Below are positions 1 to 30,690 of a stretch of DNA of 45,132 bases, piece by piece. The notes under the pieces were generated by a model. It did no database searches, was not told the DNA's origin, and saw only the letters and a list, made by a program, of their open reading frames with translations. The stretch is from Octopus bimaculoides (Eukaryota). The stretch covers positions 129,486,045-129,531,176 of the forward strand of contig NC_068984.1 of NCBI RefSeq assembly GCF_001194135.2, written 5' to 3'. Numbering within the stretch: position 1 is the first letter of the stretch; each line of letters begins with the position of its first letter. Position numbers and translations under genes: made by a program.

Positions 1-493
1 TATATATATATATATATATATGTGTGTTTGTGTGTCTGTGTTTGTCCCCCCATCATCGCTTGACAACCGATGCTGGTGTGTTTACGTCCCCGTAACTTAG
101 CAGTTCGGTAAAAAGAGACCGATAGAATAAGTACTAGGCTTCCAAAAAATAAATCGTGGGTCGATTTGCTCGACTAAAGGCGATGCTCCAGCATGGCCGC
201 AGTCAAATGACTGAAACAAGTAAAAGAGTATATGTATTCAAACACTCTTGCACCTCTTCAAAAGAAAACAAATTCTGTGCAGACTGATCTTAGAAGCAAA
301 TGTACTTCATGTTTGACCTAAAATATCCATAAATATAGTAGACAGGCAGGGCAGGGCTGAGTGGTTAAGAAGCTTGCTTGGCAATCATGTGGTATCCAGA
401 TTCAGTACCTTGGGCAAGTGTCTTCTACTATAGCCTTAGTCTGACCAATGTCTTCAGAGTGAATTGGGTAGACAGAAATTGTGCAAGTCCATA

Positions 494-526
<33 letters not shown>

Positions 527-996
527 CATGTGCATGTTTGTGCATGAGCATGTGTGTCTGTGTTTGTGCTTATCCCCCTGCCCTACACTTGACAATTGGT
601 GTTGCTTTGTTTACATCCCTTAATGGTTCAGTCAAAAAAAAAAAACCCAATAGAATAAGTACCAGGCATAAAAATAAGTACTGGGATCAATTTGATCAGC
701 TAAACCCTTCAAGGCAGTGCTCCAGCATGGCTGCAGTCCAATGATTGAAACAAGTATAAGTTAATTCTATTTGATAGACTGATTTTCATCACCTCACCAT
801 ATTTCCAAGAGCCACAAATCCAACATTCCTAAATAGGTAGCAAAGTAATGTGACATGGTCCATTGGATGGAATTCATAATATAAAAGATCAAAAATCAAA
901 ACTTTCTAAGTCAATTAATCAATACCCCTACATACTACAACTTGAGTATTCCATCACAGAAATATCATTTTTGCCAACTGAGTGAATTGGAGCAAT

Positions 997-1220
997 CATC
1001 ATCATCATCATCGTTTAACGTCTGCTTTCCATGCTAGCATGGGTTGGACAATTTGACTGAGGACTGGTGGACCAGATGGCTACACCAGGCTCCAATCTGA
1101 TTTGGCAGAGTTTCTACGGCTGGATGCCCTTCCTAATGCCAACCACTCCGAGAGTGTAGTGGGTGCTTTTACGTGCCACCGGCACAAAGGCCAGCCAGGC
1201 AGTACTGGCAACGGCCACGT
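997..1220 (-). mobile_element. RTE-LINE 3' tail copy inserted in a minus-strand tRNA-derived SINE (about 960-1325)
   Basis: Same sequence family as 24657-24887. Flanked by a gcaat duplication. Confidence 0.75.
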
Positions 1221-1516
1221 GCAATATGAAATGAAATATTTTGCTCAAGAACACAACACATCACCCAGTTCAGGAATCAAAACCACAATCTTACAGTCAT
1301 GAGACCAACACCCTAACCACCAAGACATGCACCTCCACCAAAACATCCTGTTTTAAAGTGATCTGAATTAAAATCCTCCATCAAAATTTCTTGTTAATTT
1401 AAGCTCCAAATAACAGTTAAATAATGATGGTTATTTCAGTAAATTCTTCATTATTTTCAAAATTAATTGAAATGAAGGCAGTATTTTTCAACAGAAATAT
1501 GCTAACAAAAGGGCTA

Positions 1517-1953
1517 ATCCTTTAGCATTCAGTACCGCCTGACTGGCCTCCATGCCAGCTGCACATAAAAAGCACCCACTACACTCTTGGAGTGGTTGGC
1601 ATTAAGAAGGGCATCCAGCTGTAGAAACCTTGCCAGATCAGATTGGAGCCTGGTGCAGCCTCCTGGCTTGCCAGTCCTCAGTCAAACCGTCCAACCCATG
1701 CCAGCATGGAAAGCGGATGTTAAACGATGATGATGAGGAGGATGATGATTACTTTATCAAATATAATGTTTATTTATTCACATCGTTTTGGAACTAATCC
1801 TGCATTATCTCACAGCTTCAAGATTTCAATGACATGATAATATATTTTTGAAGTGACATTGTGAGATAGGTGTAAGAGGCCAGTTCTTTCCAGGTTGAAA
1901 ATAAGACAAGTAAAATATTTGGGCCGGATAAAGCTGGTTTAAATGTTAAAGGG
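1517..1953. mobile_element. TTAA-type (piggyBac-like) MITE split by the RTE tail
   Basis: Left end taatcctttagcattcag, right end gtttaaatgttaaagggttaa. Confidence 0.65.
1533..1750 (+). mobile_element. RTE-LINE 3' tail copy nested in a TTAA MITE
   Basis: aaaagcacccactacactc...ggaaagcggatgttaaacgatgatgat. Further copies at 4590-4748, 19938-20163 and a diverged one at 31360-31570. Confidence 0.8.
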
Positions 1954-2027
1954 TTAAATAAACACCAGTATAAAACCAAATAAAATCAACACAAAAAATG
2001 AAAATTCAGAGACTAAAAGAATCTTAC

Positions 2028-2552
2028 CATTATCAGGGTACCACTCGTCGTCACTATCATTGTATCCTCTACCATCTCGACAATCTTTGACTGCAAATTC
2101 ATTACCAGGTGAATCCTCATCACTGTCATCACTTACTTTTATTGTTTTGCTGCTTGACGATGGCAAAGGTTCGCTTCGAAATTGTTTTTTCCTTTCATCA
2201 AACCAATTGTTTTTTTTTTTCTTGCTTGGGCTTGGGGTTGGAGCAAAGCGAGAATCTTGCATGACGGAATTACGTTCTTTCAAGGTTGCTAATGTTACTG
2301 TTGATGTCTTCTGGTGCTTAGGAGGAGTACGTTTAATTTTGGTCTGTTCTTTTTCCATTAAGAACTTCTCAAAAGGTGACATATCAGACTCCGATGTTAA
2401 AGAAATACCTTTAGATTTTTTGTCGCTGGGATCTTTAGTTACAGAGCCAAATGGAGTCATTTCCCCAGTTCGAATAAGCTTTTCCTGTTCAGTTTCTTGT
2501 TCAGAATTGCCAAATGTCAACATCTGATGCAAAACGGAAAGTTCTTCAGTTT
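2028..2552 (-). CDS. ERCC6: ERCC6/CSB coding exon 5 (gene continues beyond the left end)
   Basis: ctgcag|AA...G|gtaaga, 525 bp. Contains QETEQEKLIRTGEMTPFG (CSB QETAWEELIRTGQMTPFG), FEKFL (CSB FEKYL) and an acidic tract. Confidence 0.9.
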
Positions 2553-2799
2553 CTGCAGAATGGAAAATATTTACTTTAATGACATAAATTATTGGGGTGT
2601 GAGGAAACAACGGGGTTTATTAGAAATATAACAATCAACATCATTTTGATTTTGAGTGAGCACCACAGAGTAAGCTCCTGGGAATTTCAATTTCTTTTCA
2701 TAATTACAGGTGTCCTCAATGTTACCAAGACATTGCATTCATGAAGATCTTGTGTTAGAATTCATCACCATCATTATTATCATTTAACATCCATGTGTG

Positions 2800-2841
<42 letters not shown>

Positions 2842-2851
2842 NNNNNNNNNN

Positions 2852-2893
<42 letters not shown>

Positions 2894-3264
2894 CATGTGC
2901 GAGTGTTAATGTCATATCATCATACTAGCAGTGTCATTCATTTTCAATCTTCTGTGAATACATATCTAGCTATGGAGAAATAAAACATCGTTTTAGAAAC
3001 AGATGAAGATTGGCAACAGGAAGGGTATCCTGCTGTAGAAAATCTGCCTCAAGGAATTTCATCCAAGCATGGAAAAGTGGACATCAAAATGATGATGATG
3101 GTGATTGAATTTAAGTTCCACAGTAACAGTATCACCTTCCTGCATGCCATGGGAAGCATGATATGTAGTATGGTGACATAAGTAGGATATTTATTTACAG
3201 AGTATAAAGACATATGAAATCTTAGTCGGCAGATTGATTTTTCCTCTTTTTACTTAGACATTAC

Positions 3265-3358
3265 CTTGCTTAACAAGTTCCTCATCTGCTTCCAGTCCAT
3301 CAGCATTGCCATAGATCTTAAGATGTAGTGCTTTCATCTTAGCTTTAATTTCTTTCAT
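3265..3358 (-). CDS. ERCC6: ERCC6/CSB coding exon 4
   Basis: tag|ATG...CAAG|gtaatg, 94 bp. Encodes MKEIKAKMKALHLKIYGNADGLEADEELVKQ(E). Phase 0 in and phase 1 out, consistent with adjacent exons. Confidence 0.8.
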
Positions 3359-5003
3359 CTATCCCAAAATATTTGAAAAACAAAAAGAGCAAAAGCAGAG
3401 ATCAAAATATAGAACATATTAGCCCTTTTGATGGGAACCCACCTGAAACAACCCCTGGATCTGTGACACAAACTTCCTGTTTTAAAGCGATCTAAATTAT
3501 AACTTTTTATCAAAATTTCCCAGTAATTTATGTTCCAAACACCAGCTTAATAATCACTAAGTTATTTTATTTAAATATTTCATTATTTTAAAAACTAATT
3601 GAAACAAAAGCAATGTAATTCAACAGAAATATGGTTAAAAAAGAGTTAAAATGGTTTAGAATGATGAACTAGAAACATCACACTTAAGTGAATCAATCTA
3701 TTTTTCGGAGATGTATTTGCATAGCAAGTGACCTGATCTGAGATCGTGTGCTGGAACGAAAACAACTGCAGCGTGGAAGGTGTTTATAAGCCATTTAAGA
3801 AACACAAAAAAAACCGTTAGATTCACTTCAACATCTAAATTTAATTTGCCAAAATATTTTCATCGCTTTGAGACCGCGACCTGTTCACTGACCATTTATT
3901 CAGAAAGCATTCAGTATTATTTTAGCCATATCCAAGAACTTTACAGCTTTTATAGTATCATGACTATGATAATATATTATAAACAAAAAAAAACTTGTTA
4001 CATAACACCATAAGCAGTATGTAATATCTCAGATTTAATTGCTGTAGTTCAATCAAAGATGAGCTGCCATCTTGGATTGATACTGGCTCGGGAGCAGAAT
4101 ATATCATAACCATTAGTGTCAGAATGCAAAGAGCCAAAACAGATACTGCAAGGCACCTAGTGTGACTGTTTAATTGGGCTACCTATCAGCCTTGAAAGGA
4201 CAAGGGGCAAAGCTGACCACAGTGGCATCAAGTGTTCAACAAAAGAGACAATGAAATGACTATAAACATCTTAACAGAAGGCTATGGTGTCAGTAAGGCT
4301 GTGTGATAACTAAAATGTTGTTATTTCAAATTATCTGAGAAAAATAGATATTTTATGTAAAGGAATATTTTCATGGAAAATATTTCAGAGAAAAGACATT
4401 AAAGTGCAGACATGACTGTGTGGTTAAGAAGCTCACTTTAGACAACCATGTGGTTTCAGGTTCAGTCCCATTGCATGACATCTTGGGCCAGTGTCATCTA
4501 CTACAGCCCTAAGCTAACCAATAATTTGTGAGTGACTTTGGTAGATGGAAACTGTGTGAAAGCCTTGGAAAGTATATATATATGTATGTGACATGTAAAA
4601 GCACCCACTACACTCTCAGAGTGGTTGGCGTTAGGAAGGGCATCCAGCTGTAGAAACCTTGCCATCTGGTTTCACCAGTCCTCAGTCAAATCGTCCAACC
4701 CATGCTAGCATGGAAAGCAGACATTAAACGATGATGATGATGATGATGTGCACATGTGTGTGTGTGTGTGTGTGTGTGTTTATCCCCACCACCACCACCA
4801 TCACCATCATTGCTTGATAAATATATTGGTTTGTTTAAGTACCAGACTTAAAATTAAGTACTAGGGTCAATTTGTTCAACTAAACTCTTCAAGGCAATGC
4901 TCTAGCATGGCCACAGTTTAACAACTGAAACATGTAAAGATTATTTCTTTTATCTTTTAAGCAAAACAACTCGATAAATATATATAAAACAGTTTATACT
5001 CAC

Positions 5004-5118
5004 TCTTTTTTCTTTATGTTGTTTAACAGAATCTAATTTTCTAATCTCTTTCAAAGGCGCACTCTTACGCATACTTGCAAGTACTCGGTCAACTCGAGCA
5101 ATTTCTTGCTTCAACAGC
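5004..5118 (-). CDS. ERCC6: ERCC6/CSB coding exon 3
   Basis: poly-T tag|G...AGA|gtgagt, 115 bp. Encodes LLKQEIARVDRVLASMRKSAPLKEIRKLDSVKQHKEKR, matching CSB RKLDSVK. Confidence 0.88.
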
Positions 5119-5345
5119 CTAAAAAAAAAAAAAAAAACAGATTAAAAGTATATTCATTATATGAATATTATAGAGATGTTAGTTATCTAATTCTCTGAAC
5201 GCAAACTTCAGAAAATGAATAAAAATCATGAAACTAAAAACCATGTTTTATAAAACAATGAATTTTGCTCTTTAGAGACTCCCTCTTTGGATTTTAAAAT
5301 TCATTGAGAGAAGCTAATTTGTGAAGTCCAAACTGTTTAACTTAC

Positions 5346-5445
5346 TTGCAGTCATCTTCAGCCGCTGCTAACTGTTTAGTCATCTGTTTCTTTCGTCTTT
5401 CCTCTTCTTCTTTCTCAATAGCATTATCCACCTGGGCAATGACAT
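5346..5445 (-). CDS. ERCC6: ERCC6/CSB coding exon 2
   Basis: cag|AT...AA|gtaagt, 100 bp. Encodes (N)VIAQVDNAIEKEEEERRKKQMTKQLAAAEDDC(K), matching CSB VLQQVDNAI. Phases fit both neighbours. Confidence 0.88.
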
Positions 5446-5875
5446 CTGGAGGATGTCATTAAATTATTCAAAGAAAGATATATATGATTAACGGGGAATA
5501 AAGATTTATTTAAAACACAAATCTGAACATATGATGCTTCATTTACAGAATCATATCACGAAATGAAATATTTACAAAGTTAAAACTTCATGTAAAATTT
5601 TAAAATAAATGAACCTGTACAAAATTTGTCGCATGTGTGCATACATGAATGGAAAAGTGGGTATCGTTGTGGCAATGGTGCCATTGCAGCCAATGAAGTA
5701 AAAAAACTTCAAGTAAGGTAAATTAATAGAATCCTACAGGAAACCAAATAAAATGCAGTTTAACACAATGAAAAGAACAAAAAGGAATTATATCCTTCTT
5801 TCTATATACATTTACATGAAAGAAAAAAAAATGTTAATGTTAATGTTGTCTAGGAAATAGAAAATAGAAGCTTAC

Positions 5876-6191
5876 TTTGTTCAAATTCTTCCTGATTAAA
5901 AACTGTAAGACCAAGAGAAGATAGTTCATCATTAACTTGACCTTCCAGATGAGCTTTTGGTATTAAACTTGTATCCACCTTAAATGTATCTGTAGCTTTA
6001 TTTCCAGAGCTACTTTCACTTTCTCTCTCATCAGGATTGAAACTAGTATCCATACTGGAATTACCAGGAGTTTCTAGAATCTTCATGGATAAGAATTTAC
6101 TTGACTTAACTTCGGATGTGGAAGGTTTTTCATTGTCCACATCAAAATTATCAGCATTATCACTGTCTGAGAATGATTGTTGCATATCCAT
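5876..6191 (-). CDS. ERCC6: ERCC6/CSB homologue, first coding exon (exon spans 5876-6213, ATG at 6191)
   Basis: MDMQQSFSDSD...FKVDTSLIPK...ELSSLGLTVFNQEEFEQ resembles the CSB N-terminal ELQGLGVDVYDQDVLEQ motif. Acceptor ttctttatag at 6214, donor A|GTAAG at 5875. Confidence 0.85.
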
Positions 6192-6299
6192 ATTTACCTG
6201 GTACTTTGACAGCCTATAAAGAATAAGAAAAAATTTTCAGAAAACTCATAATTTTCATTTTAATCCTCTCAGACCTAGGCCCCTGTGTCTAACTTTACC

Positions 6300-6433
6300 C
6301 TAATCACTACTTTCTTCATCACTTTCACCAGCTTGATTGTCCGAATCACACTCATTGTCTACGTAAGGGTAAATTCTTCATCCGAAGAATAAATATCATC
6401 AATAATTTCCTCAATTGTAAAGAGTCTAGGCAT
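6300..6433 (-). pseudogene. Possible piggyBac-like transposase N-terminal relic
   Basis: MPRLFTIEEIIDDIYSSDEEFTL, frameshift, VDNECDSDNQAGESDEESSD*. Acidic N-terminus beginning like PGBD3 (MPRTLSLHEITDLL). Confidence 0.35.
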
Positions 6434-6545
6434 TGCTTGTTTACCAAAGTGCTGGGTTCATCACATGCTTTTCTTATTGCAAAAAAAATTTGTTTTTTCT
6501 CAATTAAAAACAAAAGTAGGTAACAGCTATGGGGGATATCATTAA

Positions 6546-6767
6546 CCCTTTTGTTATCACATTTATTTTGAGACGTTCTGTGTTTCTTTCAGTTAATTTT
6601 AAATATAATAAAGGATTTAGTAAAATAACTTAGTTATCATTTAGCTGGTGTTAGGAACATAAATTGTGACTAAGGTTTCGTGGAAGATTTTAATTCAAAA
6701 CTTATGAAAACAAGACATTTGTACTACAAAGCCAGAGCCGGTTTCAGTCGGGTTGGTATCAAAAGGG
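6546..6767. mobile_element. piggyBac-like MITE, 222 bp, TTAA TSD
   Basis: TTAA at 6542-6545 and 6768-6771. TIR cccttttgttatc / ggtatcaaaaggg. Related copies in reverse orientation at about 3423-3645 and 1330-1515. Confidence 0.8.
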
Positions 6768-7043
6768 TTAACGACGATTCATAAACACACTTGACTACAG
6801 AGTTGCAATGTAATCAGTTATCTATTTTTAGTACTTCATCTTCTTTTTCTACATGTATTGTTCATTACTGCTTTAATAGGAATCTAGTGGAGATTACATT
6901 TAGACGATTCCTACTGTACTGGGAACACAGCACAAATGAGTTAATAATTTTCATTTTAAAACAAGGAATTTTTTTTTAATCATTATTTTGTGCAGTGAAA
7001 CTGCCATTAGCTGCATACTACTGAATTAGCTAGTTAATGATAC

Positions 7044-7842
7044 TGGTATGACTGAGTGGTTAAGAAGCTTGCTTCTTCACCCTTTGATCTTAGGTTCTAG
7101 GTTCAGTCCCACTGCGTGGCACCTTGGGCAAGTGTCTTCTACTATAACCTTGGGCCGACCAAAGCCTTATGAGTGGATTTAGCAGACAAACCGAAAGGAG
7201 CTGTCGTATATATATATATATATATATATGTATCTATACGTGTATGTCCTTGTGTCTGTGTTTGTCCCCCCACATCATCGCTTGACAACCGGTGTTGGTA
7301 TGTTTACGTCCCCGTAACTTAGCGGTTCGGCAAAAGCGACCGATAGAATAAGCACTAGGCATAAAAAAATTTCTGGGATCGATTTCGGAAAGACTTCCTT
7401 TTGTACCCCACCGCCCATAAAATTTTTTTTTTTAATATTACAACATGATGGAAAATTGATTTCCTGTCATGTCTTATAATAATAATAATGAGAAAGTCAT
7501 AAAAATTTAGAATTTCTATTAAAAAACTTCATTTCTGTATTATGTATAGTCATGTCCCAATTTACCTAACGTTAAGGCCTAAATTGCCTAACTCTATGAA
7601 ATTTGCGTAACCTTGGGACATGAATATACAGAATAAGAAAAGTTTTTTTTTTAATAGAAATTCTCACCATCGTTATTATAAGATATGGTAGGAAATCAAT
7701 GCTCCACCAAGTCTAATATTGAAAAAAAAAAATTACAGGTAGGGTACATAGGGAAGTCTTTCCTCGATTTCTTCGACTAAAACATTTCAAGGCAGTGCTC
7801 CAGCATGGCCACAGTCAAATGACTGAAATCAGTGAAAGAGTA
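7044..7842 (+). mobile_element. tRNA-derived SINE family 1 with internal (TA)n, interrupted by the MITE at 7387-7763
   Basis: Head tgagtggttaagaagcttgc..ggttcagtccc, core ccttgggcaagtgtcttctactata, 3' end cagtcaaatgactgaaa. Other copies: 1-230, 345-760, 4411-4940, 14281-14630, 18880-19154 (+); 23870-24200, 31885-32138 (-). Confidence 0.85.
7387..7763. mobile_element. Foldback-like MITE, 377 bp, 8-bp TSD, inserted in a SINE
   Basis: TSD tcgatttc at 7379-7386 and 7764-7771. TIR ggaaagacttcc..tgtaccc. The interior is also an imperfect palindrome. Confidence 0.9.
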
Positions 7843-8898
7843 TTATAAGCTGGAGCACGCTAAATACAGTAATATAACTTTTTATCAACTTGCTTGTTTT
7901 ACAACATAACAACAGTACGTATATGAATGCGCGTGTTGTTATACAAACTATACATTTATTAATGGTTTAATTTTGTTAATAAAAAAAAAATGGAATTTAT
8001 CGATCTTTGATCAAGAGAAGCAAGTAGGGGAAGAACTCTCTATATTCAAAATTAAGTTGACCTACTTTATAGATCGTAATTATTTCATCATGATTATATA
8101 AGATGACATTTATAATTCATACCCATATGTAAATAGCGGGTCAGTTTACTGAAGAACAGACTGCCAAGTCCTACATACCCTATATAGTCTATAACCGATA
8201 GGTATATTTGTGTGTATGATATGCCGTTTTACATGAGTAAATTTGGATTAAAAACCAAAAAGAAATTGCTTTAAGGACTGTACAATTTTAACAAAATGTT
8301 AGTATTTACATTTTTGATAAAATTGTAAATATTTTCTTTTATTCAATGATAATATATATCACCTGAAATATAGATGATAATGATGATGTTTTTTTTTTTT
8401 ATTAACTACTAAGGATTCTCAAAACATTAATTCTTTATCTCATTTGTCGGTGCCAGTTTATCAACTTAAGATAGGATTTATAATCAAAGTGTAGGGAACA
8501 CATCTCATTCAAAATATACAATACTGTTTTAAAAAGGAATAATGTAGTTTCTGACATACAAAACGATGGGATGATCATGTCAAAAGTTCCACTTAAAATG
8601 ATCGAAAGGTTTAAAACCGAGAATCGAGATCAGTTTACAAAATACTACCGAATAAACTGTCTGCAATAATATTATACATGTATGTGAGTCAAACGCTACA
8701 GTGGTTGTATGTCCCCATAAAACTAGTTTCGATTGTCGCTTCTAAACCTTTCACATGTTTGATGAAGCTTGCGTTATTTATCCGCAAGTCAACCCGGGTC
8801 GAGCAAACATATATATATATATATATACCGGAGTAAGCACATAAATGTGCAACAAGGTGGGAAAAAGAGTACTCAAATACCAGAGGTAGAGTAATATG

Positions 8899-9086
8899 CT
8901 TTATTTAAAAGCAGCAGAAATATAACTAAAAACTGTTACTCGGAGTTTCGCGTTCCCGTTCATCGGACAATTAGTTTTGATTGCATCGTAATTTCTTTCC
9001 CATTTCTAACTAAACTGTCCGATAAATGGGAACGTGAAACTCCGAGTAACAGTTTTTAGTTATATTTCTGCTGCTTTTAAATAAAG
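8899..9086. repeat. About 78-bp inverted repeat, probably a Penelope-like terminal repeat, containing hammerhead-like motifs
   Basis: Arms at 8899-8975 and about 9008-9086 are near-perfect reverse complements. Confidence 0.75.
8933..8970 (-). ncRNA. Candidate minimal type I hammerhead ribozyme
   Basis: TTGT-CCGATGA-ACG GGAA CGC-GAAA-CT CCG AG-TA-ACAG gives stems I-III and the core (U4C variant). The second copy at 9015-9052 (+) has G8A. Confidence 0.45.
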
Positions 9087-9239
9087 TATACACATACACA
9101 NNNNNNNNNNNNNNNNNNNNNNNNNNNNNNNNNNNNNNNNNNNNNTATATATATATATATATATATATATGACGTTGGTAAAGAATACGCACACCCGGTG
9201 TTTAGGGTTAGGGTTTAATATATCGGGTATTATATTCCC

Positions 9240-9830
9240 CAATATGTCTTTCTTTAAGACGGTCGGGTGCGGCGATCTGAGGGAAATGTGGTCGCAAATT
9301 TTAGCAGGCAAATATTCCTCAAATAGACATGTTTTCCATCCATTGATTATATAAATCTAACCACGAGAAGTCGAAAAACTGGTTGCAAAAAATCGCACCA
9401 TCAAATGAGATAAAGAAATAGAACAATTTATAAGTTTGTATCTCAGAAATAAATTAATGTGAAAAGAAATGTAAGGAAATCTCAACAATAGATGTGAAAT
9501 AAATAATTTTAACTGACTCATCAATGTGCTTTGCTGGCTTGTCAAGTGAGTCAAAACTATTAGCTATTATATGAAATATTTAATTTTAAATTTAACTGTA
9601 TGTATTTAGATTTACATTAATTAAAAATCGAACACGTTTGCTGTTTCAGAAAAAGTTTAAGACTTTAAGAAACAAAAATACAAGGCTCGAGAGAAAGCAG
9701 AATGGTAACTTACGGCAAACACCGCAGTTGAAGGACCAAAGTATTTATGTACAATGAGAAGCGATAACTCTCGAGAACAGAAGGTAGAAAATAGAGCACT
9801 TCGTCTGTAAACAAGTTATTTAGGATGAAT
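9240..9830 (-). promoter_or_regulatory. Putative non-coding first exon plus intron start with GTAAGT donor (9713-9708); homologous blocks upstream of the ZNF genes
   Basis: Similar to 44395-44900, 33400-33600, 21260-21555 and 26340-26545. The donor is retained at 44795 and 33496. Function is inferred only. Confidence 0.45.
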
Positions 9831-10937
9831 GAAATTACTATTTGTTATTAGATTTGAAAAACACACCTCTAAAAATTTGCATTCATCATTTCCAATTGTT
9901 GGGGGTTTATATTTGCTTACTTTCCTTTTGTTTCGCATTGTCGTTTGTCGTTTTATCTATTACTTGTTTCAGTCACTGAACTTGCGGTTATGTTTGGGTA
10001 CATCGAAAAGTTACCAAAACGTTCCGAAAGTGACCATTGCACCTTTTAAAAGTGTTTCGACCATTATTTCCAGCTATTAAAGTATTTTTAGTCTAGTTTC
10101 GATTTGGTTCACAATGATGATGATGACGACGATGATGATGATGACGATGATGATGATGACGACGACTACCACTCTTTCTTCTAAAGACACAAGATATGAA
10201 ATGTTGGAGGCGAGGGGCAATTGGTTACATCGAACCCAGTGCTCAAATGGAACTTATTCTATCGATCTCGAAAGGATAAAAAGCAAAGTCGACCTAGGTG
10301 AAATTCGAACTCAGAACGTAGCTTATTGTGTACCGTGCTTCTCATTGGAGAAGCTAAAAACAGGGACTATAAGCTGTTGTAAGTCGAATAAAAAAATTAC
10401 AGGAATGAGAGCCAAAAACAGAAATGTGGAAAATAAAAGAGCCATAAAGAGGAAAGGATGCATAGGCACATCAAAAGTAATGTTAGTAAATTTTGAAGGA
10501 TGCAATGTCCTGGCTGTTAAACAACAAGGGTAGATTAATAATTAAACTTTAATTCATGCTTTGACAATTTTGCATCCAGGAACGCTACGAAAAAAATATA
10601 TATAGAATAAAAATGAAGAGGACCATGGGATCATACAGCAGACCTCCAGACCTTCAATCTGAGTTCTGCTGTATCTGAGTTCTGTTGTATCTGAGCTGAC
10701 ATGAGACTAAATGACAAACAGCGAAAGAACCGGAGGAGCGGGGGTTACTGCCATAGCACAACAAGCTGAATATAGCAGCAATTTTCCTCGTTAATACATT
10801 AATTCCAGTGTTAAATTAATCAACAGACATATTGAAACCCAAAACCTTATTTTAATTAAGAAATCGGGGGAAATAACAGGATTGTTATTGGAAATAAAAA
10901 GAGTGAATTTGGTTGACTGGAACTATACAGAGGCCCG

Positions 10938-10980
<43 letters not shown>

Positions 10981-11352
10981 NNNNNNNNNNNNNNNNNNNN
11001 NNNNNNNNNNNNNNNNNNNNNNNNNNNNNNNNNNNNNNNNNNNNNNNNNNNNNNNNNNNNNNNNNNNNNNNNNNNNNNNNNNNNNNNNNNNNNNNNNNNN
11101 NNNNNNNNNNNNNNNNNNNNNNNNNNNNNNNNNNNNNNNNNNNNNNNNNNNNNNNNNNNNNNNNNNNNNNNNNNNNNNNNNNNNNNNNNNNNNNNNNNNN
11201 NNNNNNNNNNNNNNNNNNNNNNNNNNNNNNNNNNNNNNNNNNNNNNNNNNNNNNNNNNNNNNNNNNNNNNNNNNNNNNNNNNNNNNNNNNNNNNNNNNNN
11301 NNNNNNNNNNNNNNNNNNNNNNNNNNNNNNNNNNNNNNNNNNNNNNNNNNNN

Positions 11353-11386
<34 letters not shown>

Positions 11387-11568
11387 AGAGAGACAGACAG
11401 ACAGACAAACAAACAAACCTCGTTTGGCCCTACCTGAGATTCCAAATCGAATCTAGAAATTCTCCCTAGCCATACGGCCTATTGTTCTGTCAAGGAGGAA
11501 CGCAGATTTATGTGCTTTCCACTCGACTCGTAACCTTTTCCATGCCATGAAAAGTTGAAATAGATAAT

Positions 11569-11702
11569 CACTAGCGCAACTAAAGTGTGTATCACCCGAG
11601 GCAGCTTTTCCGTTTGCTACCCCCGGACCCCACAAAAAACACATATTGCCTACACCAGACCCAAAAGTGCCGCCCCTACCGCCCCGCCTAGCTACGCTAG
11701 TG
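11569..11702. mobile_element. hAT-like MITE, 134 bp
   Basis: TSD tagataat at 11561-11568 and 11703-11710. 14-bp TIR cactagcg(c/t)a(a/g)cta. Confidence 0.85.
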
Positions 11703-12414
11703 TAGATAATGAGTGACCTACATTAATTTAACTATTGTTAGAACAGTATGTCTATTTTCCTAGCTAATCAGCATCATTATAAATACTAGCAGTTACAAGA
11801 TAAAATCAGTTAGTGAGAGCAACCACAGAGAGTAGGTTGACCGGCTGCACGAATGCCATCTCAATTGAAGTAACGTCACAGAGGGACAACTAATGGAATT
11901 CACCAACGATACAGTTGTCTCGTCACACCATTCTCTTACTTTCTCACTAGCTTATTTCCTTTCTACAACATCTCTCTCTTTCTCTCTCCCTCTCTCTGCC
12001 GCTTGAATGACCCGGGACATGTAAGTCTTACGCTATCCATTTATAAGTGAAAATATAACGCTCGTTACCTCGCATGCTTTCCGATTTACACGCGACTGCC
12101 CATTGTGGTTAGGCTATACATATTAAGTAACGGTAAATTAAATTTGGAGTCAATATCAACTTCGACCACTGTCCTTATTCCTTGAAATCCTATACAACGA
12201 CATTCACGTCATTTTTCTTTTCTTCAATATCATAACCGCTACATTCTGGTAACCACAACTGTTACATTTGGTGACACCGACGTCTAACTCCGTTACACAC
12301 ACACACATACTAGCAGAAATACTCATTGTCGACTGGGTTGAAAAAAGTTGCCAAAATTGTACTATGAATATTGAAAGTTATTCACTACGATTGTATTGAA
12401 TATAAGGGCCACAA

Positions 12415-13112
12415 TGAATTGCAGTGGTCGCAAGACACTGCCTTGTGGAAAACCACTCATTATTTGTTTTCTTGGAGGTGGCCCCATTGACCACCACTAC
12501 CTGACTTCTATCTTTTAGAAAGTCGTGTAGTCATTCTCAGAGTTTTCCAAATATGCGAAGATTTCGGAGCTTGTGACAAATCATAGCTTTTGCAAAGTCG
12601 AGGTATATCACGTACACATTCGAGTTGTTGAGCAGCTGCTTTAGCACCCAGTCATAATGCTGCAAGTGCTGTGTTAGGCAGCTTGTACTTGGTCGAAAAC
12701 CATGCTGGATGTCAGTCACCAAGTCATTCTCTTCAAGTAATGCAATTAATTGCCTTCGGACTATTCGTTGCATGACTTTGCTAATGTGCAAGGTCAGAGT
12801 GGTAGGCCTATAGTTTTTAGTATAAGCTCTGCTTCCTGCTTTATAGATAGGGCATATTATTCCCTTCTTCAATTTGTCCGGGAGCTTACCAATTTCGAGG
12901 AAGCTCCGAAGAAATAGCTGCAATGGTTTTGCAAGGATTCGTTTGCATAACCTGAGAAAGATTGCTGGGAATCCATCAGGACCAGCAGCTGAGTTTGCGT
13001 CTATATCATCTATTGCTAGCATTATATCCTTTTCTTCGATGTAGATGCTATCAATTCTTACTGCCTCCTGTTCAGCTTCTGTAGCAGTAAAGAATTCTGC
13101 AGCTTTGAGCAT
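12415..13112 (-). mobile_element. CR1/L2-clade LINE reverse transcriptase fragment, degenerate
   Basis: Motifs SAAGPDGFP, IICPIYKAG, NYRP, QHGFRP, YLDFAKA, then WLHDFLKDR and a frameshifted SGFPQGSVL. Confidence 0.9.
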
Positions 13113-13176
13113 ATAAACGTCTTATCTATGATCTCTAGGATTTGAGTCTTCAAAGTTATTATTCATTCTGCAAATT

Positions 13177-13700
13177 TTAGTTTGTTGATCTCATGTTAAA
13201 AACTTCCTTATAGGCAATGTTTTGGATTTTAGCAGTAGGGACGAAAATGAAAAGATTGTTCTTGCTCCCCACTCTGGAGCCCCAACTGACTGTGTGAAAA
13301 ACAATACTCCTCTGATTACAAAGCAGTAACTTTCGAAGTCTGATGTTGGGACTTATTAATGGGCATCGCAAAAGACAGCCGTATTGGGAATTGAAGTAGT
13401 TTGAATTGGAAGGACATATTAGAAGGTATTAAAGGTAAGCGAAGAATAAAAACATCTTTGCCTTTTCCACAAACAGAAATTATTGTGGCCTCCAAAATAT
13501 TTCTCAATTTCTTCACAAGTCTTGTGCAATTGCACAGTTTTGGCTGAGAAAAGTTTTGCAGAGACATGACAATGAGAAGGAGCTCCTTGAGTCTCCAGCC
13601 AGTTTAAGAAGTCAACGGTGTAATTATCAGTTTCCGAATCATCAACAGTAGAGTTTATAGATCTGTAAACTTTCTCGAGCCTTTCATTTAAATTATTCAC
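13177..13700 (-). mobile_element. Helitron Pif1-like helicase C-terminal fragment, frameshifted
   Basis: Motifs [46 protein letters not shown] and SRVGSKNNLFIF...NIAYKEVF across frames. Confidence 0.9.
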
Positions 13701-14420
13701 AGTAATGTTCTGTGCTGCCGAAGTTGTATTTAGTTATTTCCCTTTGATCGGTCATCTGTGGTCTTCCGTTTAAATTATTCACAGTAATGTTCTTTGGTGC
13801 TTAAGTTTTATTTAGTTATTCCCTTTAGACCGTTAATTTATTTGGGGACTGAGATATGTACATGTTGGAAAAGGGCCAGTAGTTCTGTACAGAGGACCAC
13901 TTCCATTGTCTTCGGCGTAACATTTTACACAAGAATTAGCTTTTGGTTTTTAGAAGGATGCTTTTGCCTTTCTTACTATAGGTGGACACACACACACACA
14001 CACGCACGTTCATTTTTATTATGTGTATGTGTGCGTGTGTGTATTTATTCTCACAGTATTTGGTAGTTTACTTCCCTAGCTGTTCGACAAAAGAGACAAT
14101 AAGAACAAGTACCAGATTTTTAAAATAAGCTCTGGGTCAATTCGTTCGATCAGTATACCAGCATGACCACGGTACCCAGGCTGAAACAAGTAAAATTATA
14201 AAAGAATGTCATTGCTATTACAGTTTAACATTTTTCTTGATTCCATCCAACTTAATGTCAAATTCCTTCAGGAATGTATAAGTAGCTTGCTTACAAGCCA
14301 CATGGTTCCGGGTTCAGTCCCACTGTGTGGCATCTTGGGCAAGTGTCTTCTACTATAGCCTCAGGTTGACCAAAACCTTGTGAGTGGAGTTGGTACACGG
14401 AAACTGAAAGAAATCCGTCA

Positions 14421-14453
<33 letters not shown>

Positions 14454-14642
14454 GTTTGTGCCCCCATCATTGCTTGACAACCGATGCTGTCTGTTTATGT
14501 CCCCGTAACTTAGCGGTTCGGCAAAAGATACCGATAGAATAAGCTTACAAAGAATCAGTTCTGGGATCGATTTGTTCAACTAAAGACGGTGCTCCAGCAT
14601 GGCCACAGTCAAATGACTGAAACAAATAAGAGTGTGTGTGTG

Positions 14643-14681
<39 letters not shown>

Positions 14682-15274
14682 NNNNNNNNNNNNNNNNNNN
14701 NNNNNNNNNNNNNNNNNNNNNNNNNNNNNNNNNNNNNNNNNNNNNNNNNNNNNNNNNNNNNNNNNNNNNNNNNNNNNNNNNNNNNNNNNNNNNNNNNNNN
14801 NNNNNNNNNNNNNNNNNNNNNNNNNNNNNNNNNNNNNNNNNNNNNNNNNNNNNNNNNNNNNNNNNNNNNNNNNNNNNNNNNNNNNNNNNNNNNNNNNNNN
14901 NNNNNNNNNNNNNNNNNNNNNNNNNNNNNNNNNNNNNNNNNNNNNNNNNNNNNNNNNNNNNNNNNNNNNNNNNNNNNNNNNNNNNNNNNNNNNNNNNNNN
15001 NNNNNNNNNNNNNNNNNNNNNNNNNNNNNNNNNNNNNNNNNNNNNNNNNNNNNNNNNNNNNNNNNNNNNNNNNNNNNNNNNNNNNNNNNNNNNNNNNNNN
15101 NNNNNNNNNNNNNNNNNNNNNNNNNNNNNNNNNNNNNNNNNNNNNNNNNNNNNNNNNNNNNNNNNNNNNNNNNNNNNNNNNNNNNNNNNNNNNNNNNNNN
15201 NNNNNNNNNNNNNNNNNNNNNNNNNNNNNNNNNNNNNNNNNNNNNNNNNNNNNNNNNNNNNNNNNNNNNNNNNN

Positions 15275-15321
<47 letters not shown>

Positions 15322-16711
15322 ACTTACTGAAAGTGCCGTAAATTCCATATCTGCTACATATGTGTATGTGTATGAAAGTTTAGCCAACTTCATCCAAATC
15401 AATAAGTTTCAAATATCTTAAGACTTGTTCACTATTTCAGTATTATTGTTGGCGGATGCTTGGTATTTGATATTGCTGGAAAACAAAAACGTCTTTCTAG
15501 GGCTGTGTTTAAAAATAAATAAAAACACTCATGAGCAATTAACGGTAACTTTATTTACTGCATATGGTGTTTTCTGTGTTGGTCTTTTGATGTAAAATAA
15601 CAGCGACAATTACACACCAGAGAGACGTACTACTAAGGGCTATGACAATTTCACTGCTATATAGCAAACTGTGGCTGCCCATCATAACTGGGAAATAATC
15701 ACACTATATCCTGATGAAAAAACCTGTGCCTTCTATCTGCCAACAGCTGGTGATGCAATGAGAATGCAGATGTCGAGTGGTAGTCTCATGATTCTATGGG
15801 AAAAGGTGAGATGTGTAAAGAAATTGACCAGTCTCAGCACTCTGCAAATAGTTTTGGTACTAAAAGCGACTTTATATAAGGCACGAAGTCAAAGTTACGT
15901 CACACGATGGGTTGATGCTGATTGATTGGTTAATTGGCCGATCATGTGAAACTGCTGTGTCTTAGCCATGATATCTACTCAGTTGTCCAGCGGGTTGGTT
16001 TCAAATCTGCAACACTATTCTTAGAATGAGATATAGATGTCTTTGTGAAGGTGCATGACTTAGTGGTTAGGTTACAGCACTCACGATCTTGCAATCATGA
16101 TTTCTATTCATAAACCGGACGGTGCGTTGTATTCTTGAGCAAAACATTCAATTTCGCATTACTCCAGTCCTCTCAGCTGTAAATGAATTCTAGCAATAGC
16201 TGGCAAGTTGATTCTGCAGAATAAATGCTGAAAGAATGTCTCTGTAAGTATAAGTTCATAAGACATACAAAGTTCCACAAGTCTTTTACTTTTTCTTTTT
16301 TTTAGTGAGGATGGAGGAGTCTATAAAAAGAATTTTCCAACTTCTCTTGAGAAGTATTTATCCATGTTGGATTATAATGCTTAGGTTAATGGTTGAAGAT
16401 TGGCATACATGTTAAACTTCAAGGTGGACTGCGATTGATTAAGAGCAGAAATTCTGAATGATATAATAGTTGTCTGCATGTACCATTTCGTTCAGTTTCC
16501 CTTTTATCACTCCTTTCATTTTCTTTACATTTCCATGTCTTCTTGCACTCAAATTAGATACTGAGCGCTCACATTTGTAAAACCACTTGTCTTTCTTTTG
16601 GCAACAATTGTATTTATATATAAATTCGTATTTCTTCCCTGATTTATTATGGGAAATGGTTTTAAAATGTTGGTTATTGTTAAGATGTAATAAATTTTGA
16701 CTATGTTACAG

Positions 16712-18247
16712 TCAGTCATTTGTATGGATAGATATATGTGAAGTTAAGTTGCATTTCTGAGCAAATGATTTACCACACATATTACAGTGAAATGGTTTCT
16801 CTCCCGTATGGATACGTCTGTGTCTACTTAAGATACTACTTTGAGAGAATGATTTACCACAGATATCACAATGATATGGCTTCTTCCCTGTATGAACACG
16901 TTTGTGAGTATTTAAGGAACTACTCAAAGAAAAAGATTTACCACAGATATCACAGGGAAACGGTTTCTCACCTGTATGAATACGTTTGTGAGTAGTTAAG
17001 GCATTACAAACAGCGAATGATTTACCACAGATATCACAGTGGTATGGCTTCTCCCCTGTATGAATACGCTTGTGAGTGGTTAAGGCATAACCTACAGAGA
17101 ATGATTTACTGCAGATATCACAATGATATGGCTTCTCCCCTGTATGAATACGCTTGTGACTAATTAAATTACCATCGGTAGAAAATGACATACCGCAGAC
17201 ATCACAGTGGCATGGTTTCTCTCCTGTATGGATACGTTTGTGTTTAGTTAAATGATCCATTCGAGAGAATGATTTGCCACAAACTTGACACTCAAATGGT
17301 TTCTCACCTGTATGTATACGTTTGTGTTTAGTTAAGGTGCTATTTTGTGAAAAATAGTTTCCACAGATATCACAGTGATATGGCTTCTTCCCCGTATGAA
17401 CACGTTTGTGAATAATTAAGATATTACAGTTAGAGAATGATTTACCACAGATATCACAGTGATATGGCTTCTCTCCTGTATGAATACGCTTGTGAGTAGT
17501 TAAGGCATTACATACAGAGAATGATTTACCACAGACATCACAATGAAATGGTTTCTCTCCTGTATGAACACGTCTGTGTAAAGTTAATAAAGAATTTTGA
17601 TAGAATGATTTACCACAGATTTCACAGCGATATGGTTTCTCTCCTGTATGAATACGTTTATGAAAACTTAGTTGACTTGCAGTTGAACATAATTTACCAC
17701 AGATATCACAGTGAAATGGCTTCTCCCCAGTATGAACTCGTTTATGAGTAGTCAAACTACCATTTAAAGCAAATGATTTACCACAGATATCACAGTTATA
17801 TGGCTTCTCTCCTGTATGAATACGTTCATGTTTCATTAATGTACTATTCTGTGAGAATGATTTACCACAGACACCACAGCAATATGGCTTCTCCCCTGTG
17901 TGAATACGCTTGTGATTAATTAAGACATTACTATGAGAGAAGGATTTACCACAGGTGTCACAGGGATATGGTTTCTCTCCTGTATGAATACGCTTGTGTC
18001 TAGTTAAGATACCATTTTGAGAGAATGATTTTCCACAGACATCACAGTGAAATGGTTTCTCTCCTGTATGAATACGTTCATGAATATTTACTTGACTACT
18101 TGTACTGAATGATTTACCACAGATATTACAGTGAAATGGCTTTTCTCCTGTATGAATCAGTTGGTGTTTAGTCAAGACATTTTTTCCAGAGAATATTTTA
18201 CCACATACATCACAATGATATGAGGATTTTCGTTTGGCTTTCGGCAT
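16712..18247 (-). CDS. C2H2 zinc-finger protein A, 511 aa, 18 tandem fingers
   Basis: Uninterrupted ORF of CxxC-x12-HxxxH units with TGEKP linkers. Start about 11 aa before finger 1. Conserved acceptor ttgttatttcag upstream (exon begins 18622). Confidence 0.95.
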
Positions 18248-18880
18248 CTCATCAAGGGATAAAAATAGATCGAATCCTTAAATTTTTCCACTATTAAATT
18301 TAGTTTCAGTTTTCTTCTTTTAGTAACAGTTCATTCCTTACAAATATTTCCACTGCTATTAACTGTAACCTTCACTGAAATCTAAATATCCTGAGAATTC
18401 ATCCAAGTTTAATTAGAATTCAAAGAAACCAGATGAGAAATAGAAAATGCTGCTGATAATCTCAGTTGAGAGCAAGTATTTCCCAGTGATCCTGTCATAG
18501 ATTTATCATAAAAGGATTGTATCTCTTCTGTATATCATTCTCCTTAATCTTTAAAAGATGATAAAATTAGAAGATATATCCTCTGTGAAAAAAGTTCTTT
18601 TATGCCAATGTCATCTGTTAATCTGAAATAACAAAGACACAATATAAGATACAAGGGATAGATAAACACGAAAATTTAACAACATTTCTATATTGATAGA
18701 TAAATTATGTCCTAAAAAATTGTATGAAATCTACATGTTTGTAAGCTACAGTTACATCTTCACATTGTGTACCGTTATATTAAACAACAGAATAATGGAC
18801 ATTAACATTCTTCTTTCATGACAAACACCATTTGTCATTATTGTTTAGCTCCAGATCAGTCCTGATTGAGCAAACCAAAG
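18248..18880 (-). other. Conserved 5'-UTR/intron block upstream of each ZNF ORF (copies 18248-18880, 30691-31300, 40657-41200)
   Basis: Collinear similarity among the three copies, including the acceptor tctttgttatttcag|ATTAAC. Confidence 0.8.
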
Positions 18881-20580: not shown

Positions 20581-21975
20581 GCTTATTCTGCCAAAATTTG
20601 AAACCGTTATTATGCACGACTTACAGTAAAATTAACCGTCAAATCATTTCAGCAACAAGTGACACTCTGCGTAGTGCCGTAGTTATTTTTATTTTTAAGT
20701 ACGTGCCTTGTTTCAGTTTTCTTTATAACATTTACAAAAATAGAAATAAGAAAGGAAAAAGATTTTAAAAAAGGGTGGGTAAAGCAGGAGATGGAGAGGG
20801 AGGGGCGATGGTTCACATACCCTACAATAAATGGTGTGCATAGCCGCGCCCCACTGGTTACGACCACAGTGACATTGCCGCGGAGAATTATAACCGTCAA
20901 CTATTTAAATGCCGCCGAAGTCGACATTGCCTTTCATCTTTTCGGGGTCAATAAGATAAGTACCAGTTGAGCTTTGAGATCGATGTAATCGATTTATTCC
21001 TTCCTCAAGAAATTGCTGCCCTTCTGCCAAAATTTGAAACCAATATTAACCGTCGACTTACTTCAGCAACAATTTATGACTTTCAATGCTAGAAATGTTT
21101 GAACACAGGGTGACTTGGTTTTCGATGGAAACGACACGCAACCCTCGCCAAATATCCATCTACCATCAAACAAATTCCATATATATATGCATGCATGTGT
21201 GTATGTACATCAGGGATTATATTATATAATATGCCTTTCTTTAAGACGATAGAGTACGATTTGAGGGAAATGTGATTGCAAATTTTAGTAGGCCAATGTT
21301 ACTCAGCTAGGCAAATCCTTCACCCTTTGATTATATAATAACCAAGAGAAATGCAAAAATTGCAACAGTAAATGAGATAAAGAAAAATTAAAAAAAGCTA
21401 TGAATTCATATCTCAGATTTAAATTAAGAGAAAAGAAACAAGAAAATCTCAAAAATAGGTGTGAAATAAATGACCAAAATGAATTTTAACTCACTCATCA
21501 ATGTATTCTGCTAGCGTAACAAAGACTATACGAAATATTTAATTCTAATTTATCNNNNNNNNNNNNNNNNNNNNNNNNNNNNNNNNNNNNNNNNNNNNNN
21601 NNNNNNNNNNNNNNNNNNNNNNNNNNNNNNNNNNNNNNNNNNNNNNNNNNNNNNNNNNNNNNNNNNNNNNNNNNNNNNNNNNNNNNNNNNNNNNNNNNNN
21701 NNNNNNNNNNNNNNNNNNNNNNNNNNNNNNNNNNNNNNNNNNNNNNNNNNNNNNNNNNNNNNNNNNNNNNNNNNNNNNNNNNNNNNNNNNNNNNNNNNNN
21801 NNNNNNNNNNNNNNNNNNNNNNNNNNNNNNNNNNNNNNNNNNNNNNNNNNNNNNNNNNNNNNNNNNNNNNNNNNNNNNNNNNNNNNNNNNNNNNNNNNNN
21901 NNNNNNNNNNNNNNNNNNNNNNNNNNNNNNNNNNNNNNNNNNNNNNNNNNNNNNNNNNNNNNNNNNNNNNNNNNT

Positions 21976-22322
21976 GGCCCAGTGGTTAGGGCAGCGGACT
22001 CGCGGTTTCGATTCCCAGACCGGGCGTTGTGAGTGTTTATTGAGCAAAAACACCTAAAGCTCCACGAGGCTCCGGTAGGGGATGGTGGCGAACCCTGCTG
22101 TACTCTTTCACTACAACTTTCTCTCATTCTTACTTCCTGTTTCTGTTGTGCCTGTATTTCAAAGGGTCAGCCTTGTCACACTGTGTCACGCTGAATATCC
22201 TCGAGAACTACGTTAAGGGTACACGTGTCTGTGGAGTGCTCAGCCACTTGCACGTTAATTTCACGAGCAGGCTGTTCCGTTGATTGGATCAACTGGAACC
22301 CGCGACGGAGTGCCAACAACAA
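21976..22322 (+). mobile_element. tRNA-derived SINE family 2 with (CAA)n tail
   Basis: Head ggcccagtggttagggcagcggactc..gtttcgattccc. Minus-strand copies at 33636-33744 (16-bp TSD tgttattatagtggaa) and 44896-45132. Confidence 0.85.
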
Positions 22323-24656: not shown

Positions 24657-25415
24657 GATCATCATCATCATCGTTTAACGTCCGCTTTCCATGCTAGCAT
24701 GGGTTGGACGATTTGACTGAGGACTGGTGAAACCGGATGGCAACACCAGGCTCCAATCTACTTTGGCAGAGTTTCTACAGCTGGATGCCCTTCCTAACGC
24801 CAACCACTCAGAGAGTGTAGTGGGTGCTTTTACGTGTCACCCGCACGAAAACGGCCATGCTCGAAATGGTGTCTTTTATGTGCCACCNNNNNNNNNNNNN
24901 NNNNNNNNNNNNNNNNNNNNNNNNNNNNNNNNNNNNNNNNNNNNNNNNNNNNNNNNNNNNNNNNNNNNNNNNNNNNNNNNNNNNNNNNNNNNNNNNNNNN
25001 NNNNNNNNNNNNNNNNNNNNNNNNNNNNNNNNNNNNNNNNNNNNNNNNNNNNNNNNNNNNNNNNNNNNNNNNNNNNNNNNNNNNNNNNNNNNNNNNNNNN
25101 NNNNNNNNNNNNNNNNNNNNNNNNNNCTGGCAACAACCTTACTTGGCTTGCCGGGTCTTCTCACGCACAGCACATTTCCAAAGGTCTCGGTCAGTAGTCA
25201 TCGCCTCGGTGAGACCCAATGTACGAAGGTCTTGCCTCACCACCTCAGCCCAGGTCTTCCTGGGTCTACCTCTTCCACGGGTTCCCTCAACTGTTAGGGT
25301 GTGGCACTTTTTCACGCAGCTATCCTCATCCATTCTCACCACATGTCCATACCAGCACAATCGTCTCTCTTGCACACCACAACTGATGCTTCTAATGTTC
25401 AGCTTTTCTCTAAAT
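24657..25415 (-). mobile_element. RTE-clade LINE 3' end: ORF C-terminus plus 3' UTR with (GAT)n tail, interrupted by a gap
   Basis: ERRLCWYGHVVRMDEDSCVKK...GTRGRGRPRKTW...DRDLWK is a typical RTE C-terminus. It is followed by the ...gcggacgttaaacgatgatgat tail. Confidence 0.9.
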
Positions 25416-26899
25416 GGTTTCCTTGGACACACACCAGTTAGCCAGTAACGAGCAGACAGGCAGCATCGTGATTGAGATGGTGACCACTGTGAGCCAAGGG
25501 ACCAGAAGGTAGCAGTTGCAGACCATGAACAGACAAGATAGAAAAACAACACAACACGACCAAATGACAAACACACACAGACACAAATTATGTTTCATAC
25601 AATTTTGTCCCATCAACATTCTCTTTTCTCATTTTTTTTTCTTCGCTGACTTAAAGCAGTTGGTAACTTTATGTAGCAGCATATTTGTTCATATTTCAAA
25701 TCAAGCTTTCTGCATCCAACATATAAATGCAACTGTAACCAAATAAATTATGGAAAATGCATATCTATTCTTTTTCATTTGTTTTCCTTTGATGTCGGTC
25801 CAACATGCCTACCATCATTCTGCTACACCCAACAACTTACACAGATCCATCAACATCACATTTCATCACACATTCCACTACAATTACCAAAAAAATTCCA
25901 AACATGAAAATCCGCCTTTCAAAACAATTTCAAAACCATTGTCGTTTTTAAAAGCGTTCCAACTATAACAGTCCCAAAGTCTAAATGTAACCATTTAAAA
26001 ATTTTTTTTCAAACTACAAACTCTTTCATGTTACATTCTACCATCTTTTTTAATGACATCTAAGATGTTGATGATGATGATGATACTTTCTACTTTTGGC
26101 ACAAGTTCTGAAGCGTTGGTGGAGGGGGTGAGCTGATTACATTGACCCCAGTGGTCAACTGAAACTTTATGACTTTCAATGCTAGAAATGTTTGAACACA
26201 GGGTGACTTGGTTTCCGATGGAAACGACACGCAACCCTCACCAAATGTCCATCTACCATCAAACAAATTCCATACATATATGCATGCATGTGTGTATGTA
26301 CATCAGGGATTATATTATCCAATGTGCCTTTCTTTAAGACGATAGAGTACGATTTGAGGGAAATGTGATTGCAAATTTTAGTAGGCCAATGTTACTCAGC
26401 TAGGCAAATCCTTCACCCTTGATTATATAATAACTCAGAGAAATGCAAAAATTGCAACAGTAAATGAGATAAAGAAAAATTTAAAAAATTATGAATTCAT
26501 ATCTCAGATTTAAATTAAGAGAAAAGAAACAAGAAAATCTCAAACTTATTCTATCAACTCTGAAAGGATGAAAGGCAAAGTAGGCCTCGGTGGAATTCAA
26601 ACTCAGAGTATAGCTTATTGTATACCATGCTCAGATGTACTACAGTTCGTTAAATATATGTAAAAGATGGACTATAAAGCAGTAGTAAGCAGAATAAAAA
26701 TTTATGGCAATGAAAGACAAAAGTGCATGCACAATTCACTGGATGAAACACAATAAGACAGAAATGTGAAAAGCAAAAAAATCCATAAGGAGCAACGGGT
26801 ATCTGGACTGCAGTTATTCCAATTTTGCAGAAAAAATCAGCAGTGCAGGGTCCGAGAACATGATGTCTGGATGGTGACTAGTACAAACTAATTTGATTT

Positions 26900-29000: not shown

Positions 29001-30690
<1,690 letters not shown>

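Follow-up and report, generated by a model that had tools for sequence, protein, structure and literature searches.

A block shared between the ERCC6 upstream region and a tandem zinc-finger array in Octopus bimaculoides: a candidate non-coding first exon

The ERCC6 5' end and the adjacent zinc-finger genes

The window analysed here, a stretch of 45,132 nucleotides, lies on chromosome CM046604.1 of Octopus bimaculoides (assembly GCA_001194135.2) at about 129.49-129.53 Mb. It carries three tandem C2H2 genes in the order ZNF-C, ZNF-B and ZNF-A and then the 5' end of ERCC6, all of them on the minus strand. The exons considered are the following:

5876-6213, minus strand: first coding exon of ERCC6; acceptor tttatag, then G, at 6213; ATG at 6191
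16712-18622, minus strand: terminal exon of ZNF-A; CDS 16712-18247 (511 aa) with a C2H2 array; acceptor 18622; untranslated leader of ~375 nt
29311-31042, minus strand: 5' part of the terminal exon of ZNF-B; called CDS 29311-30690 (459 aa); acceptor 31042
38365-40942, minus strand: terminal exon of ZNF-C; CDS 38365-40653 (762 aa); acceptor 40942

Each of the three ZNF genes has its whole reading frame within one large exon, with an untranslated stretch of ~290-375 nt between acceptor and ATG. The acceptors at 18622 (which we add to the account given in the earlier note), 31042 and 40942 are strong, consisting of a polypyrimidine tract of ~45 nt followed by CAG, and an upstream donor is therefore needed for each gene. 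The ATG exon of ERCC6 also starts at an acceptor, only 22 nt before the ATG, so that an upstream non-coding exon is required. Human ERCC6 has its ATG in exon 2 and a non-coding first exon. In this regard, the octopus gene resembles vertebrate ERCC6 in its need for an upstream non-coding exon, although not in sequence.

Searching protein collections with the ERCC6 N-terminus returned two sequences only: L003, a 900-bp genomic contig from a related octopus, and L004, a transcript contig from a distant cephalopod. The transcript aligns to window exons at 5990-5876, 5445-5391, 5051-5005, 3359-3265 and 2554-2340, and its continuation matches human ERCC6 with E=3e-264. Judged from these alignments, the ERCC6 label of the downstream gene is sound, the N-terminal exons being continuous with an ERCC6-orthologous ATPase of the SNF2 type. 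The 110-nt 5' UTR of the same transcript, compared with positions 6192-11000, gave a score of 29, which is not above shuffle level (23.5 +/- 2.9, maximum 32). The protein collections searched hold no ERCC6 or ZNF transcripts of O. bimaculoides, the ZNF matches being mostly to vertebrate ZNFs, and the three ZNF proteins are absent from the clustered protein collection.

The reading frame of ZNF-B stops at 29311, and its last ~90 residues, homologous to the C-terminus of ZNF-C, lie in another frame (29001-29279). This points to a frameshift relative to ZNF-C; ZNF-B may therefore be decaying, or the assembly may be wrong there. The array goes on beyond the window end at 45132, past a gap of 1314 N (L002:1-4207), where a further upstream unit shows spacer-like sequence at 1597-1810 and acceptor-proximal intron sequence at 3126-3897.

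The shared block and its copies

Upstream of ERCC6 and of the ZNF genes, five related segments are found:

9219-9820, minus strand: block E, 3.5 kb upstream of the ERCC6 ATG exon; reads as a diverged paralogue of the putative 5' module of the ZNF unit
21206-21554, minus strand: block A, intron part only, upstream of the ZNF-A acceptor at 18622; its exon and donor would fall inside the N gap 21555-21974
26166-26544, minus strand: copy A2, 380 bp copied secondarily from the A intron, with neither exon, core nor donor
33453-33597, minus strand: block B (core, exon and donor); GTAAGT at 33491-33496, 2.45 kb upstream of acceptor 31042
44393-44899, minus strand: block C; its GTAAGT donor (44790-44795) precedes the acceptor of the ZNF-C exon, 40942, by 3.85 kb

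The earlier note had described about 600 bp upstream of ERCC6 as collinear with sequence upstream of ZNF-A, ZNF-B and ZNF-C, and self-BLAST bears this out. Positions 9272-9820 match 44396-44899 (69% over 559 bp, E=4e-59), 9219-9538 match 21206-21515 (73% over 333 bp, E=3e-49) and 9763-9818 match 33543-33597 (86%, E=8e-12); between blocks B and C, 33453-33744 match 44752-45006. All of these matches have the same orientation and their alignments are collinear. A degenerate core of 29 nt, TAACTTGTTTWYAGANGRARTGCYCTATT, occurs three times in the window and not once in 100 shuffles. Eight matches to this core in a metagenome scan were rejected as chance, no similarity being found outside the motif.

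The limits of block E differ somewhat from those first proposed. Its start, previously given as 9240, moves to 9219, where the homology begins; its end, previously put at 9830, probably shifts as well, as E and B remain similar for ~40-60 nt upstream of the core at 9820 (p ~0.008 once the SINE and one duplication copy are removed from B). Beyond ~60 nt, similarity between E and B is not significant. At the other edge, the homology of E ends at half a MITE, a microsatellite and a gap, so that 9219-9820 is the extent visible in the assembly. As for the inventory of copies, those already listed are present, and the copy upstream of ZNF-A does enter a gap, at 21555; the fifth, partial copy at 26166-26544 had been missed.

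All five copies are on the minus strand, four of them at intervals of ~11-12 kb, 11.3-12 kb for those that bear the exon, with donor positions along the array at 44795, 33496, ~21.7 kb (in the gap) and 9713. Each of the three copies that belong to ZNF units precedes the strong acceptor of a ZNF exon by 2.4-3.9 kb. Units A, B and C are homologous through intron, exon and spacer, and the homology of A and C runs well past the block into the intron (20591-21554 vs 43742-44687) and resumes at the acceptor. Block E is homologous to the unit over 600 bp only, and neither a ZNF remnant nor spacer homology was found around it in positions 1-16600.

Copy A2 is 98% identical to 21073-21453 over ungapped columns (K2P ~0.017) and is inserted precisely in a SINE-like repeat (26064-26722), between ...GAAAC and TTATTC..., with AAAC at both junctions; an intact relative of the host repeat lies at 10140-10417. 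The boundaries of A2 show no discontinuity in the E/A/C alignments, and it can therefore be taken as a secondary copy of part of a unit. The copying of this part of the A intron was secondary and recent and did not include a promoter, and the outcome resembles a templated or filler insertion more than a transposon: as in templated or filler-DNA insertions and small ectopic duplications, a piece was copied alone over a few kb, here with 4-bp microhomology. Block E, unlike A2, is much older (K2P ~0.22-0.25 vs 0.017) and includes core and donor.

Duplication mode, age and direction of copying

The distribution of the block copies fits a DNA-level segmental duplication of the ZNF gene unit, and not the activity of a transposon. 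This is argued by their single orientation, their regular spacing and the absence of terminal repeats and target-site duplications. Within the sequence at hand, the block behaves as part of a duplicated gene unit and not as a dispersed repeat. In line with this notion, the C2H2 expansion of octopods is accepted to have proceeded by tandem duplication (PMC9068888, PMC9795677), and the octopod C2H2 literature that we searched confirms tandem expansion and makes no mention of shared 5' exons. The array resembles coleoid C2H2 clusters, and by analogy vertebrate KRAB-ZNF clusters, in its head-to-tail units of ~11-12 kb copied whole (PMC9068888, PMC9795677). It also resembles coleoid clusters in the make-up of the unit, with upstream module, intron, single finger-array exon and spacer, and in its fast-diverging finger arrays. 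What sets the present locus apart from those clusters is one module copy standing alone beside an unrelated and conserved DNA-repair gene, with no finger exon behind it. Block E is most likely a by-product of local gene-cluster duplication, ordinary for an octopus ZNF cluster.

Two other accounts of how block E came to its position have to be weighed against segmental duplication. If the block were a dispersed transposable element, or a fragment of one, lying upstream of genes by chance, the richness of the region in SINE and MITE insertions would be accommodated, as would A2, an isolated 380-bp insertion in another repeat with AAAC on both sides. However, all copies have the same orientation and occupy equivalent positions in their units, A/C homology extends past the block, and the junctions of A2 leave the E/A/C alignments uninterrupted. 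Moreover, no terminal inverted or direct repeat, poly(A) or (CAA)n tail or target-site duplication bounds E, B or C; for contrast, the SINE beside block B, which is 5'-truncated, carries a (CAA)n tail together with a duplication of 18 bp (tcttccactataataaca), and the interspersed repeats proper of the same window occur in both orientations. No further block copy was found in the 4.2 kb beyond the window, so that window and extension together hold same-orientation copies only. A transposable origin is, on this evidence, very improbable. A different concern is that E lies on a 1.8-kb contig (9146-10980) between N gaps, and its placement therefore depends on scaffolding: the contig might have come from another ZNF unit and not belong upstream of ERCC6. 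It is bounded by (TA)n runs and N gaps (9101-9145 and 10981-11352), the cluster is repetitive, and the exon-bearing block regions of other units fall in gaps (21555-21974, and the 1314 N past the window end). Against a misplacement, the downstream gap is estimated to be small (45 N), the orientation and spacing of E fit the array, and E is not the missing part of unit A, with which it overlaps at ~73-81% identity. We regard a scaffolding error as improbable.

With segmental duplication as the preferred account, the age of block E can be placed relative to the units. K2P distances are 0.22 for E-A, 0.25 for E-C and 0.18 for A-C, which would make E slightly an outgroup to A and C; over the exon part they are 0.38 for E-C, 0.37 for B-C and 0.49 for E-B. 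The divergence of E from A and C is comparable to that between A and C, which places the origin of E in the period of the unit duplications.

The direction of copying is less clear-cut. In the simplest seeding model, in which ZNF, spacer and ERCC6 leader were duplicated together, the spacer between ZNF-A and E is predicted to be homologous to the B and C spacers. The latter are 71-99% alike over >3 kb, and no homology to the spacers after ZNF-B and ZNF-C was found in the ZNF-A-to-E spacer: unit homology ends ~70 bp after the ZNF-A stop codon, and the next 6.8 kb up to E are transposon-rich unique sequence. Of the proposal that an ERCC6 promoter seeded the ZNF cluster, what holds is that a block with its consensus donor kept is common to the ERCC6 upstream region and the ZNF units; the simple version of the model lacks the spacer homology it predicts. 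Since copy A2 shows that small pieces can be copied alone, either direction is possible, and the sequence gives a slight lean towards block E being a stray module of a ZNF unit.

Several other elements were observed in the window. Units B, C and A have each independently acquired a copy of a ~350-bp SINE family that bears a (CAA)n tail, 0-400 bp upstream of the block core (33636-33745, 44898-45132 and 21975-22322, respectively), the B copy being 5'-truncated with an 18-bp target duplication, the C copy abutting the core and the A copy inverted; another lies in the intron of the next upstream unit (L002:3358-3709). The region upstream of the block core may thus be a hot spot of SINE insertion. 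No tRNA-like SINE heads were detected in a scan. A MITE-like element, with inverted ends (AAGAATACGYACACC) around telomere-like CCCTAA/TTAGGG repeats, is present as a complete copy in the C intron (44299-44382) and as a half copy at the 3' edge of E (9181-9215), by the (TA)n run and the gap. Just downstream of the gap after E lies a MITE-like, near-perfect palindrome of 196 bp (8895-9090), whose arms are 84% identical overall and 93% over 83 bp. Retrotransposon-like ORF fragments occur in the spacers at 12537-13112 (minus strand; weak RVT_1 match, E=1e-4, below the Pfam cut-off) and at 25139-25576 (minus strand; no Pfam match).

Block E as a candidate first exon

Three features within or next to block E bear on a possible role at the start of a transcript:

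9708-9713, minus strand: GTAAGT donor, the sole minus-strand GTRAGT between 6214 and 15326
9714-9820, minus strand: candidate non-coding exon without an ATG; its 57-nt core is conserved and its 3' half diverged, and a YAG at 9805-9807 is conserved too
9843-9852, minus strand: TATA-like TCTAATAACA, 34 nt upstream of the core; a putative promoter element

The minus-strand GTAAGT reported at 9713, 33496 and 44795 is found at exactly these positions, and each visible copy, three in all, has retained it although the surrounding sequence has diverged by 30-50%. The paralogues thus have a consensus donor in common, each paired with a downstream acceptor on the same strand (6213, 31042 and 40942, respectively). 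The distances of 2.4-3.9 kb earlier given between donors and acceptors are correct with these acceptors, although every interval spans an N gap whose length is an estimate. No GTRAG[TAG] other than the block donor is present in the C intron interval. As regards ERCC6, 9713 is the single GTRAGT donor on the right strand within 9 kb of its acceptor on the upstream side.

Conservation in the leader is highest over its first 57 nt, where E and C are ~86% identical, and over the 18 nt from the donor (18/18). The E and B leaders contain no ATG; in unit C, the putative splicing would leave an upstream ORF of 30 aa. The upstream stretch over which E and B remain similar takes in the TATA-like motif of E, whose homologous counterpart in B, TATAATAACA (33618-33627), precedes the core by 30 nt. 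In unit C, a SINE directly abuts the core, and any upstream promoter there would therefore be separated from it. The conserved YAG at the 5' edge of the leader could be an acceptor, which would allow the segment to be read as an internal exon. Taken over its full length, the putative exon has diverged further than the intron next to it (K2P 0.37-0.49 vs 0.18-0.25), and several patches of the intron are as conserved as the core; an exon-specific constraint is consequently only putative.

The CpG content of the region was considered as well. Around the four block positions, the observed/expected ratio amounts to 0.93-1.07, compared with 0.44 for the ZNF exons and 0.34 for the body of ERCC6, and the level of the blocks is reached by a fraction of 0.03-0.045 (3-4.5%) of circular shifts. 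Invertebrate genomes have a mosaic methylation in which gene starts are unmethylated and gene bodies methylated. The pattern at the blocks would be compatible with unmethylated gene starts, young CpG-rich SINEs being a confounding factor. Over the whole window, in 1-kb bins, the ratio is periodic, rising to ~0.8-1.3 in the 2-3 kb around each block and falling to ~0.2-0.5 over the body of ERCC6, the exons of the ZNF genes and the spacers downstream of them.

The sequence establishes the homology and collinearity of the copies, the conserved donor, the geometry and the absence of transposon hallmarks; a transcription start and splicing at the block, like any role of block E in ERCC6, are inferred. 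The 5' module would comprise ~60 nt of upstream sequence with the TATA-like motif, a non-coding leader of ~100 nt ending at GTAAGT, and the first 500 nt of an intron. In the ZNF genes, the module most likely provides a non-coding first exon, whose leader would be spliced over an intron of 2.4-3.9 kb to the single large zinc-finger exon. Copy E would have arisen in the same period of local duplication as the ZNF units and come to lie at the ERCC6-proximal edge of the array, with no ZNF exon of its own. Its position, its strand and the quality of its donor would make it the best candidate at hand for a non-coding first exon in ERCC6, a use that the geometry makes plausible. To this joint reading, in which E is a diverged paralogue of the ZNF-unit 5' module, the module is the likely first exon of the ZNF genes and E is a candidate first exon of ERCC6, we assign a probability of roughly 0.55.

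In this regard, the locus is reminiscent of promoter or first-exon capture by tandem duplication, as a donor-bearing 5' module stands before two unrelated kinds of exon, on the same strand and at similar intron distances. It differs from such captures in that the spacer homology of the simplest model is absent, and any chimera would here be a prediction from the DNA. A bolder proposal is that ERCC6, a conserved gene of transcription-coupled repair, and the adjacent lineage-specific ZNF genes are driven by paralogous promoter and first-exon modules, either because the promoter of the repair gene was amplified and so founded part of the octopus ZNF expansion or because ERCC6 was rewired to a ZNF-type promoter, and that they would be co-regulated either way; we consider this doubtful.

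The main competitor of the first-exon reading holds that the block is neutral spacer DNA of the tandem unit, copied along with the ZNFs and once separately by ERCC6, transcription starting elsewhere. Such an origin would account for the putative exon being more diverged than the intron part and for the scattering of conserved patches over the whole block, and it agrees with the SINE abutting the core in C and with the recorded gene calls, which give the ZNFs as single coding exons. Furthermore, non-coding conservation within the units peaks outside the block, at -250 to +80 around the ZNF acceptor (94-100% among A/B/C). On the other hand, the boundary of the ZNF exon is a textbook acceptor in CpG-depleted DNA and is not promoter-like, CpG around the blocks is not depleted, and GTAAGT survives in 3/3 visible copies amid strongly diverged surroundings, with no rival consensus donor in unit C or upstream of ERCC6. 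Taking both sides into account, we hold a neutral spacer to be unlikely, and continue to favour the block as a probable first exon of the ZNF genes and a candidate one of ERCC6.

Should ERCC6 make use of E, the regulatory front end of a housekeeping repair gene would be reshuffled by the very local duplication that builds the large ZNF expansions of the octopus, and the block would offer a defined promoter module for studying ZNF gene control. If it is not used, E would be a stranded piece of the tandem array, still of value as a marker of its edge and age.

A further observation concerns the acceptors of the ZNF exons. The tract of near-identity among A, B and C covers the last ~250 nt of the intron and the first ~80 nt of the exon (18595-18875, 31014-31311 and 40914-41212; also L002:3707-3897) and is flanked by sequence that is ~75% identical. 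It may represent either a sharp gene-conversion tract or a constrained functional element.
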